The notes: generated by a model from the sequence alone, not told the origin. Shown: positions 51,301 through 54,067, numbered from the stretch's first letter. The stretch: DNA of 64,000 bases from Bigelowiella natans CCMP2755 (GCA_000320545.1 ADNK01000048.1:124001-188000); one strand, 5' to 3'. Numbers and translations are program-made.

Positions 51301-54067
51301 TAAATAAATATATTAATATATATATATTCTCCTCCCCCTCCTCTCATCATCATCATCATCATCATCATCATCAATCATCATCAATCATCATCAGCGCTTA
51401 CCTGCGCTAACGCTTTGGTCGGGAATATATAGAGAACTGTTGCGGTGGGGTCCGCCAAGATCGCAGCAAGGCTGCACACGTTATAGACGAGGCTCTTCCC
51501 GCTGAACATACAATCGTTTGATGATTGCGATGTAGGTGATGATGACGATGAGTGAGAGGAAATAGTAGCTCAACGAGCGAGGACAACGGAGAGCAAAGAA
51601 AAGCACGATTTTGTGTGTGTGTGTGTGTGTGTGTGTGTGTGTGTGTTGTATATTGTGTGTATGAACCTGCTCGTTGACGTTGCAATTACAACATGCTCTC
51701 CGCGTCTGATGTGCTTGATCGCTGAGGCCTGATGAGTGTACATCCGATTGTAGTTGTAGGCCTGTGATAGAGATAAAAGGTCATGCTTTTGCTGCGAATT
51801 GATGATGATGATGATGATGGTGATGATGATAGTGGTAACGTCGAGACTGAGCTCCCAACAAATTCTTCTTAGTTGTTGTTGTTATTGTTGTTCGTCTTCT
51901 TCTTCTACAGTTGGGTTGTGATTAGATCGGCAAAGGCCAGGATCTTATCGTCATCACCACCTCTGACACCACCATTATCCCCATCCTCATCACATATGCC
52001 TTCATCGTCATTATCATCATCATCATCACCTTTAGCACTTGCTGCATTTGAGGAGTCAACGCTGTCATTCCGAAGCGGGGGCGTTTGGCTGGAATTCGCT
52101 TTGTTTCAACAATCTGAGGCAGCAGGAAGAAGTGATGGCAGTAAGTAGCGGTGGTGAGTAGTAGTAGTAGTAGTAGTAGTAGTAGTGCAAACGGTTGGTG
52201 CTAAGAGGATTCGGCGTGCCAACAACAGTTGCAATTCGTATGTGTTTTGCATTTATCTTCCATGAAGGAAATAATTCCCACAATATTAAACTGCTGTTGT
52301 TCTCAGGATTGGCTCTCTGCTGCTGTGGCTCCGCACAACCAACGCAACAAGTATTACAATAATACCTGGTCCTTGTAGAAGGGAAGGCTCCGAATATATT
52401 CCAAAAACGCTGCGACTGAGGGCTTCTGAGGCGCTGATGATGATGATGATGATGATGATGATGATGATGGCAATAATGCCGATGATCGTCGAGGAAGCAA
52501 GGGAGTATCTTCAAGCTTAAACACAGATGAGGACGATGAAGATGATAACGAGCGCTTCGATGCCGCAGCGATATTTCCTGCTTCTTCTTTCCCATCGTCA
52601 CAGCCAATCGGAAGGAGAGGATCTTGCTTTGGCAGTTCGCAGACTGCAATCTCCGGCCAGTCGAACTGATGATGGAGGGGGGGGGGGGATGCACACACAT
52701 AGTTATATTTGTAAACATTCACAAAGTCAGAATGGCAACATAGCTACAGACGAAAATAGGACAAGCAAGCTCTTGCTACTACTACTACTACTACTACTAC
52801 TACTCTCGATGGCGATATTGCCATTACATTTGCGATGTCGAATTCGGGGTGGAGACTGCCATATTTCGGCAAATCGTCTTCGGCTCTAAAGTGTATTGCA
52901 GCAAAAGATATATAATGGTGGTAATGATGATCATGATGAATGATGATGTGGTGGTCAACAACGAGTACATGAATCGGCACACACACACACACACACACAC
53001 ACACACATATATATATTATATATATATATATATATATATATATATATATATATATATATGTGTGTGTGTGTGTGTGTGTGTGTGTGTGTTCATGTATACA
53101 CGTAGACCGAGGAATATAGATTTGCAATCGAATATCATTACCTCGTCAGCAAGAAGCTCTCGTGCTTATCCAAGACGATCGTCACCAGCGCCTTGTGCAG
53201 TTCTGGCAAGAAGAAGACGAATATTGAAAGAGGAAACCAAAAGGAGGACTCTCAATTTAGACAACGGTAGCGGTCCGCTCTTATCCGACGGTATTTTGCT
53301 GCGAAACAGAGATGCCACAAACAACCACCTTGCGTCCACTTTCTGATCTTGGCCTTAGAGATGAATCTCTTTGTTTTCTTGAACGTAATCTGTGGATAGC
53401 GACCATTGTAATGACTTCATCGGGTTGTATAAGGCGAACGATCTCGCATGTTTACTTTGTATTGCATCGTTGGAGATTGGTCCGATTTTTCCTCGGTGAT
53501 TCTCCATCCAGAATCGCACTGATCAGAGACCGAATAAATGCCGAGCCCAACTACGGATGGCACCAGGTGGACTATTTGACGCAGGTTCCTGGTTGAATAA
53601 ACATAGGGATAAGTAATCAACCGTGCTGCAGTGACTCGCACAGAGAATAATCCGTAGGAAAGAAAAAACGCGTGAAGCGTACATGAACGTGAGCGGTCTC
53701 CGAAGCAATCCTTTAGTGCCCCCCAACACACGCTCTATCTCGCAAGGGGCATCAGTCTTTATCAGGATGCTGCAAATAGCGCATACTACCCCGAAACCTG
53801 TTCGAATGAAGGCACTCCGTTCATATCATGGAGAGAGGGGTAAAGCCAAGCTGGCACGAGCAATTACCTTCCTCGAGAAGTCGATATTTCTCGGGCAAGA
53901 TTATTGTCTTGGTGACCTCCTTCCGCGTTGTTCTGTGCAAGCGCGAATAATAGAAACGAATACAGACGTGCGCGTTCAGTGGTAGTGGTTGTTGCAAACG
54001 ACAATTGTTAATGCCCCTATTCGTCCCATACTGATCAATACCTCTTCCTCTTTTTCCTCGGCGGCAT
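42310..54067 (-). CDS. HRQ1: HRQ1/RecQ4-type DEAH helicase with C-terminal DUF1998 Zn domain and N-terminal CDT1-like domain (roughly 30+ exons)
   Basis: MYTHQASAI; Walker A ATSTSSGKS; LYIFPTKALAQ; FVVLDE|AHLYRGCFGSHV; FIACSATIANP; FLFWNPP; ITFCKVRKVCE; SYRAGY; VVATSALELGIDVGSLD; QQAGR|CGR; VYPGAIYLQQG; GIHGAAHAL; IYERHKGGLG; CPC...GCPQC...CPEYNE|VMDKEAALMIL, stop at 42310. Confidence 0.93.
46627..46682. repeat. Perfect 28-bp tandem duplication (intronic)
   Basis: ACACTCTCGTTCATCCGTTCATTCATTC x2. Confidence 0.9.
52966..53096. repeat. Fold-back compound microsatellite TACATGAA-(CA)n-(TA)n-(TG)n-TTCATGTA in an HRQ1 intron
   Basis: The arms are reverse complements, with an 8-bp non-repetitive inverted flank. 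Confidence 0.85.

Follow-up and report, generated by a model that had tools for sequence, protein, structure and literature searches.

A Cdt1-like domain at the N-terminus of the Hrq1 helicase of Bigelowiella natans, with evidence for an ancient fusion

Bigelowiella natans possesses an orthologue of Hrq1, the eukaryotic 3'-5' DNA helicase of the MrfA/YprA type that is usually placed in the RecQ4 family, and the N-terminal domain of this protein is a true homologue of the middle domain of Cdt1 (a winged helix plus a long helix). The gene lies on the minus strand of the window, the 64,000-nt stretch of contig ADNK01000048.1 (124001-188000) that was analysed, and its full coding sequence runs from 54067 to 42310. 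A first-pass annotation of the window had described a CDT1 geminin-binding domain joined in frame to an HRQ1/RecQ4-type helicase, and had suggested an independent coupling of such a helicase to origin licensing. The explanation that best fits the combined evidence, to which we assign a probability of about 0.88, is that of an Hrq1 orthologue with an old Cdt1-like N-terminal fusion that would serve as a DNA repair helicase rather than as a licensing factor.

The B. natans gene is divided into many exons of 26-300 nt. Eleven short exons (E1-E11) form an open frame of 366 codons without a stop, counted over the exon chain, and all ten introns within this chain have GT..(C/T)AG ends. Every peptide quoted in the first-pass annotation was located on the minus strand. 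The ATG at 54067 is the likely start because the only other ATG in the transcribed 5' region opens an upstream ORF; it begins a basic stretch, 'MPPRKKRK', that resembles a nuclear localisation signal. E8 is a single open exon in which the last Cdt1 block is followed by the beginning of the helicase, and that portion of the fusion is therefore independent of the splicing argument. The linker between the two parts is Ser-rich and of low complexity.

Features of the B. natans Hrq1 gene, with positions counted from the first letter of the window
Feature	Position	Strand	Evidence
Upstream ORF of 11 codons in the 5' UTR	54129..54164	-	ATG at 54164, sole other ATG in transcribed 5' region
Start codon, opening 'MPPRKKRK'	54067-54065	-	ATG scan
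E1, with 5' UTR	54067-54042 coding; exon 54042..54222	-	joint 53932/54042 in X1, X2 and X9; contig ends; ATG scan
E2, Cdt1 block 1 'ILPEKYRLLEE' from about 53901	53868..53932	-	joints 53932/54042 and 53795(+2)/53866(+2); P0006 13-33
E3, Cdt1-like domain, first helices	53683..53797	-	joints; P0006 35-70; tblastn E 3.8e-5; family HMM 35-72
E4, Cdt1 block 2 'NLRQIVHLVP' and wing	53456..53588	-	joints; P0006 73-113; family HMM 72-120
E5, Cdt1-like domain	53329..53389	-	joints; P0006 116-135
E6, Cdt1 block 3 'LVTIVLDKHESFL' in long helix	53142..53202	-	joints; P0006 137-155
E7, first half of Cdt1 block 4, 'GSLHPEFDIAN'	52828..52885	-	joint 52665/52828
E8, end of Cdt1-like domain 'FDWPEIAVCELPK' (to 52627), Ser-rich linker, helicase start 'FLEYIRSLPFYKDQ'	52366..52665	-	sequence; joints at both ends; tblastn P0006 167-243
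E9-E11, helicase Q motif region and Walker A 'GKS'	52113-52030, 51761-51667, 51501-51402	-	contig pieces and lengths; DEAD match on E11
Remaining helicase exons, many and short: DEAD motifs II-III, Helicase_C, putative Hrq1 winged helix, MZB	42310..51401	-	P0006 and P0007 by tblastn, collinear as far as 42313
Stop codon TAG	42312-42310	-	last exons read
Transcript joints	53932/54042; 53795/53866 (cut +2); 53587/53682 (cut +1); 53389/53456	exon borders of minus-strand gene	contigs of X1, X2 and X9
Transcript joints	53202/53329; 52885/53142; 52665/52828; 52113/52366	exon borders of minus-strand gene	contigs of X1, X2 and X9

The exon chain was compared with public RNA data. Transcript runs were chosen in which about 27% of sampled words of 51400-54100 were present, the share expected of spliced RNA. 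Four runs were aligned to 51350-54350 (3001 letters), and spliced contigs were recovered from three studies (X1, X2 and X9). Eight splice joints matched the predicted exon borders exactly, each with CT..AC ends on the plus strand. One X9 contig of 1466 nt spans E3 to E11, from the Cdt1-like exons through the Walker A motif. The E9/E10 joint falls at a skipped repeat and is thus unlisted; the record lengths there (74+8+97 letters) equal E9 plus E10 (179 nt). The 5' ends of the transcript contigs reach 54212-54222. The X9 strain showed three differences within E3 and E4, all at third codon positions and read as synonymous. In a raw-read RNA run (X19), of which about 6% was read, no reads were placed. 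The Cdt1-fold domain and the helicase are expressed on one transcript, and the in-frame joining proposed in the first-pass annotation is borne out by the exon chain, by E8, by the E3-E11 contig and by the eight joints.

A search with the exon encoding motif III (49596-49748) over 1.84 billion representatives returned a 100% match to P0001, a protein of 918 aa. Listed at JGI as Bigna1 66503, an fgenesh prediction, P0001 is the public B. natans model of this gene. It already joins the Cdt1-like part to the helicase, and several of its borders require correction. Its start is an ATG at 54313, outside the coverage of the transcript contigs. E1 and E2 are read in the wrong frames, with the loss of block 1 ('LPEKYRLLEE..'), and the E7 donor is placed 24 nt beyond the true end; the joint 52665/52828 backs the donor chosen in the first-pass annotation. 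P0001 also ends prematurely, reading into an intron near 46676. The corrected model starts at 54067, reads exon 2 in a different frame and ends exon 7 at a different donor; it also gains about 4.4 kb of coding region, which brings the probable Hrq1 winged helix and the zinc-binding domain.

The orthologue of Amorphochlora amoebiformis, P0006, aligns exon by exon with the corrected model (residues 13-33, 35-70, 73-113, 116-135, 137-155, 162-173 and 178-195). This alignment uses the frames of the first-pass annotation, and the spacing between E7 and E8 is free of gaps. By tblastn, the window is collinear with P0006 down to 42313.

Homology of the N-terminus to Cdt1 was assessed with single exons or public proteins, including P0001. 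P0001 scored 38.5 bits on PF08839, the CDT1 middle domain (E 1.7e-9; residues 82-221 against profile positions 21-167), even without block 1; the Pfam gathering cut-off is 22.6 bits. Block 1, which P0001 lacks, is encoded by E2/E3, and all four Cdt1 sequence blocks are present and in order, as the first reading of the sequence had held. A profile of the Hrq1 family (A1), built from 18 full-length members, matched human Cdt1 (2wvr_C) through its N-terminal positions at E 4.3e-14. It also matched 8rwv_G (E 8.9e-14), mouse Cdt1 (2zxx_C, E 5.5e-12) and 8s0e_8.

Single exons gave little. A Pfam scan of single exon translations returned no Cdt1 match and almost none for the helicase exons either, and phmmer of E3 and E4 against the PDB returned no match. 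These blank searches are uninformative because the exons are too short; the helicase exons score equally poorly. When an HMM specific to the N-terminal domain of the family was run exon by exon across the whole window, the top rank went to E4, with E3 third and E5 tenth; the three matches were collinear, and each of them was insignificant taken singly.

The fold was examined on P0007, an intronless homologue (L002:1001-1645) that stood in for the B. natans domain, with alignment A3 supplied; the last ~25 residues of that alignment are misaligned. A second alignment (A4, a 188-aa fragment) was discarded as it stretched across helicase columns, and P0265 was rejected for the fold, being a C-terminal fragment. 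The AF2 model of the P0007 N-terminal domain had a pLDDT of 79, with the core above 90, and a pTM of 0.70. In a Foldseek search against the PDB the best ten matches were all Cdt1. TM values against Cdt1 in Cdt1-geminin crystals ranged from 0.68 to 0.70 (2zxx_F: E 3.5e-6, TM 0.68, rmsd 3.2 A; 2wvr_C: TM 0.70). Further matches were Cdt1 in human and yeast OCCM structures (8s0e_8, 6wgg_8 and 5xf8_C) and yeast 5mea. Both the Pfam comparison and the structural comparison suggested in the first-pass annotation, made on P0001 and P0007 respectively, thus point to Cdt1.

The helicase part is typical of the Hrq1 family. P0001 matched DEAD at 93.3 bits (residues 369-530) and Helicase_C at 41.5 bits in Pfam, and its helicase core shares 40-48% identity with those of fungal and chlorarachniophyte members. 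Among solved structures, the Hrq1-family profile matches MrfA best (6znp_A, E 4e-223); the match to RECQL4 (5lst_A) is far weaker (E 1e-18) and covers part of the helicase only. The Hrq1 winged helix PF22982 is present in the orthologues P0006 and P0007, and the window is collinear with them there (46891-46305), at the point where P0001 ends. A Cys-rich motif, 'CPCA..GCPQCVQSSCCPEYNE', on the minus strand at 42516-42400, is that of the MZB 4-Cys zinc-binding domain. Residues 1112-1165 of P0006, whose MZB spans 1116-1199, matched the window by tblastn with 68.5% identity at 42954-42805; the MZB exon by itself had no Pfam match. No Sld2-type family was found at E <= 0.01 in a Pfam scan of P0001 and eight homologues.

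The same order of domains (first the Cdt1-like domain, then DEAD, Helicase_C, an Hrq1 winged helix that in B. natans is predicted from collinearity with its orthologues, and last the MZB 4-Cys domain) is found in Hrq1 of Saccharomyces cerevisiae and other fungi, where the protein is named 'ATP-dependent 3'-5' DNA helicase' or 'ATP-dependent helicase HRQ1'. In contrast to fungal Hrq1, the B. natans gene is rhizarian and split into many exons; it encodes the Ser-rich linker and, between helicase motifs II and III, a long insert rich in Thr, Ser and Asn. Canonical Cdt1 (human 2WVR and 8S0E, mouse 2ZXX, yeast 5MEA) shares the middle domain with B. natans Hrq1. MrfA/YprA of Bacillus subtilis (6ZNP) and the other bacterial DUF1998/MZB helicases share the helicase core and the zinc-binding domain, whereas they are about 750-830 aa long and lack the N-terminal Cdt1-like domain. 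Metazoan RECQL4 is treated in the literature as the functional counterpart of Hrq1 and likewise has an N-terminal replication-initiation module (PMC13586618), which is Sld2-like rather than Cdt1-like.

The phylogenetic spread of the domain was surveyed as the first-pass annotation had suggested. Among eight other representatives, six exceeded the PF08839 cut-off at the N-terminus, one fell below it and one had no match; the Capsaspora homologue, at 25.3 bits, was above the cut-off. Seven of 29 further long representatives also matched. With the family-specific domain HMM, matches were obtained in 51 of 85 homologues of at least 900 aa, and 33 of the 51 lay outside the set on which the HMM was trained. 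In the class of 700-899 aa, the size of the bacterial proteins, this HMM matched only 2 of 86 homologues. Carriers, by PF08839 or the family HMM, span Ascomycota, Basidiomycota, Chytridiomycota, Blastocladiomycota, Capsaspora and other chlorarachniophytes. Named among them are Lipomyces, Geopyxis, Aspergillus, Emergomyces, Pyrenochaeta, Delitschia, Sporobolomyces, Tilletia, Rhizoctonia, Atractiella, Spizellomyces, Sorochytrium, Capsaspora, Amorphochlora and Norrisiella. No Cdt1 signal was obtained by Pfam or the family HMM in homologues from land plants, Salpingoeca and Dinobryon, and the domain is therefore not universal; the land-plant proteins have a ubiquitin-like N-terminus instead. The first-pass annotation had reasoned that a fold shared by all Hrq1 proteins would remove the novelty: sharing was found for many members, and several eukaryotic groups, these three among them, stand apart.

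The occurrence of the domain in Rhizaria, fungi and Filasterea implies that it is ancient, and comparison of sequences across the Hrq1 family indicates that the Cdt1-like fusion is old and common. The architecture is already known: it is annotated for this very protein, it has been named in print, and the fusion is not specific to B. natans. Public precomputed Pfam annotation lists PF08839 for P0001 and 12 other top matches, as the first-pass annotation had thought possible. The view that the fusion is new or special to this organism is not supported, given the presence of the domain on Hrq1 of many fungi, Capsaspora and other chlorarachniophytes.

Two other origins of the architecture were weighed. 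One is that a Cdt1 paralogue and an adjacent helicase gene were misjoined, or that the likeness to Cdt1 is due to chance. In its favour, single exons gave no Pfam or PDB match to Cdt1; the helicase exons, however, fare no better when searched singly. Misjoining is contradicted by E8, which holds the domain end and the helicase start, and by the one transcript contig that covers both parts, and chance likeness is contradicted by the PF08839 score of the public model, which passes the Pfam cut-off. We regard this explanation as refuted by the contig and the score, with a negligible probability left to it. A recent, lineage-specific fusion, in which part of the organism's own CDT1 was copied onto the helicase, is very improbable. 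The genome does hold both a CDT1 and a Cdt1-like domain, and the groups without Cdt1 signal would fit a gain in one lineage, but the exon-by-exon collinearity with Amorphochlora Hrq1 and the presence of the domain on Hrq1 of fungi and Capsaspora argue against it. So does an HMM made from Hrq1 N-termini of non-chlorarachniophytes alone, which scored Hrq1 of Amorphochlora and Norrisiella at 37.6-38.6 bits as against ~18 bits for the CDT1 exons of B. natans. The same HMM gave P0001 13.4 bits, a value that does not discriminate since P0001 lacks block 1. The taxonomic spread and this one HMM comparison thus favour a single old fusion over a recent copy.

A more serious alternative concerns function: the Cdt1-like domain may connect Hrq1 with the machinery of licensing or of the replisome, for instance through MCM2-7 binding of the kind seen for the Cdt1 middle domain in the OCCM. 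Searches of the genome bear on this question. The genome (91.4 Mb, 3736 contigs) was searched with profiles in six frames, and a separate canonical CDT1 was found on contig C2963 (PF08839 56.6 bits), with the typical blocks in locus L001. Neither geminin nor CDT1_C was found. The canonical CDT1 and a second helicase were all that PF08839 and PF09369 recovered, and the geminin and CDT1_C blanks carry little weight because introns split domains and the six-frame search missed the window's own split domains. The genome search proposed in the first-pass annotation therefore yielded a separate CDT1 and, in a weak search, no geminin; the label 'geminin-binding' given there to the domain is without support. 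In protein searches, neither P0001 nor the full-length orthologue P0006 gave a CDT1_C (PF16679) match at E <= 0.01. This C-terminal winged helix is the main MCM-binding part of Cdt1, and in contrast to canonical Cdt1, B. natans Hrq1 has the middle domain only, with a helicase attached. Its lack of a detectable PF16679 and the retention of a canonical CDT1 in the genome both count against a licensing link. In favour of such a link are the solid homology to the Cdt1 middle domain in fold and sequence, with OCCM structures among the fold matches, and the conservation of the domain across very distant eukaryotes. A modest Hrq1 signal has also been reported at yeast origins, to which the Cdt1-like domain was speculated to recruit Hrq1; the authors, however, describe the signal as modest and independent of helicase activity, and deem it probably an artefact (bioRxiv 10.64898/2026.08.13.744683). 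On balance we consider a licensing link unlikely. It is equally doubtful that the module has been kept since before the Rhizaria/opisthokont split as a working MCM2-7 or origin/fork-targeting device. If it had been, RecQ4-type helicases would have been tied to replication initiation twice independently, through a Cdt1-like module in Hrq1 and an Sld2-like module in RECQL4.

The 'Cdt1-like domain' of yeast Hrq1 was named in two papers of 2026 from the Bochman and Smith groups (PMC13586618; bioRxiv 10.64898/2026.08.13.744683), and our literature search found no paper devoted to this domain in its own right. Yeast Hrq1 without its N-terminus loses most of its ssDNA binding, and a function in crosslink repair is reported as presumed for the N-terminus of Hrq1 and that of Pso2 (NAR paper, PMC13586618). 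The yeast truncation from which a role in DNA binding or docking is drawn removes more than the Cdt1-like domain.

Under the preferred reading of an Hrq1 repair helicase with an old Cdt1-like fusion, the B. natans protein would be nuclear, as its basic N-terminal stretch suggests, and a role in DNA repair is probable by analogy with yeast Hrq1, which works at telomeres and in the repair of interstrand crosslinks. The Cdt1-like module would most likely help the helicase to hold DNA or to dock a partner, without licensing origins; we favour DNA binding or docking over licensing because of the yeast data and because no Cdt1 C-terminal domain was detected. What is new here is a better model of the gene, together with grounds for regarding the fusion as ancient.

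Most of the 256-nt intron 6 of Bigelowiella natans Hrq1, between exons E6 and E7, was occupied by a (CA)n(TA)n(TG)n microsatellite. Comparable di- and trinucleotide runs were seen in many of the gene's other introns, as well as within the low-complexity inserts of its coding sequence. The public 918-aa model of the protein, P0001, retains the Thr/Ser/Asn-rich insert at approximately residues 560-640.

In exon 8 (52366-52665) the transcript contig from one study, X9, was 9 letters shorter than the window: a three-codon length difference that most likely sits in the exon's serine-coding (TCA)n repeat. 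Three synonymous changes were also observed in X9, at 53534, 53543 and 53748. X9 appears to represent a different strain carrying the same species label.

Features of the Hrq1 gene, its divergent neighbour and the second helicase gene
Feature	Position	Strand	Context
Ser-codon run, (TCA)n, coding	near 52430-52470		within exon 8
Compound microsatellite, ~130 nt	52958-53090		intron 6
Long Thr/Ser/Asn-rich low-complexity insert, in frame	49749-50153		between helicase motifs II and III
Hrq1 transcript start	~54222	minus
798-aa open frame, EF-hand-like and WD40-like protein	54960-57356	plus	almost intron-free
MrfA Zn-binding domain (MZB) match	C1447:26305-26544		second helicase gene

Upstream, a spacer of ~740 nt (54222-54960) separates the Hrq1 transcript start from the divergent EF-hand-like/WD40-like frame, and may serve as a shared bidirectional promoter of the two genes.

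L002, an ENA metagenome scaffold of marine or environmental origin, carries an intronless gene (1001-4690) for a 1229-aa Hrq1. This protein shares 40% identity with its B. natans counterpart and has the Cdt1-like N-terminus as well.

A second helicase gene of the MrfA/YprA type, intron-poor or intronless, lies on contig C1447 of the B. natans genome, within 22000-29000. In tblastn, both P0160, a protein from Chloroflexota, and 'YprA-like' proteins of plants (P0199) matched it at 30-47% identity. No Cdt1-like part was seen in this gene within 22000-29000. B. natans may possess two lineages of MrfA/YprA-type helicase, and plant 'HRQ1' may be a member of the second, C1447-type kind.
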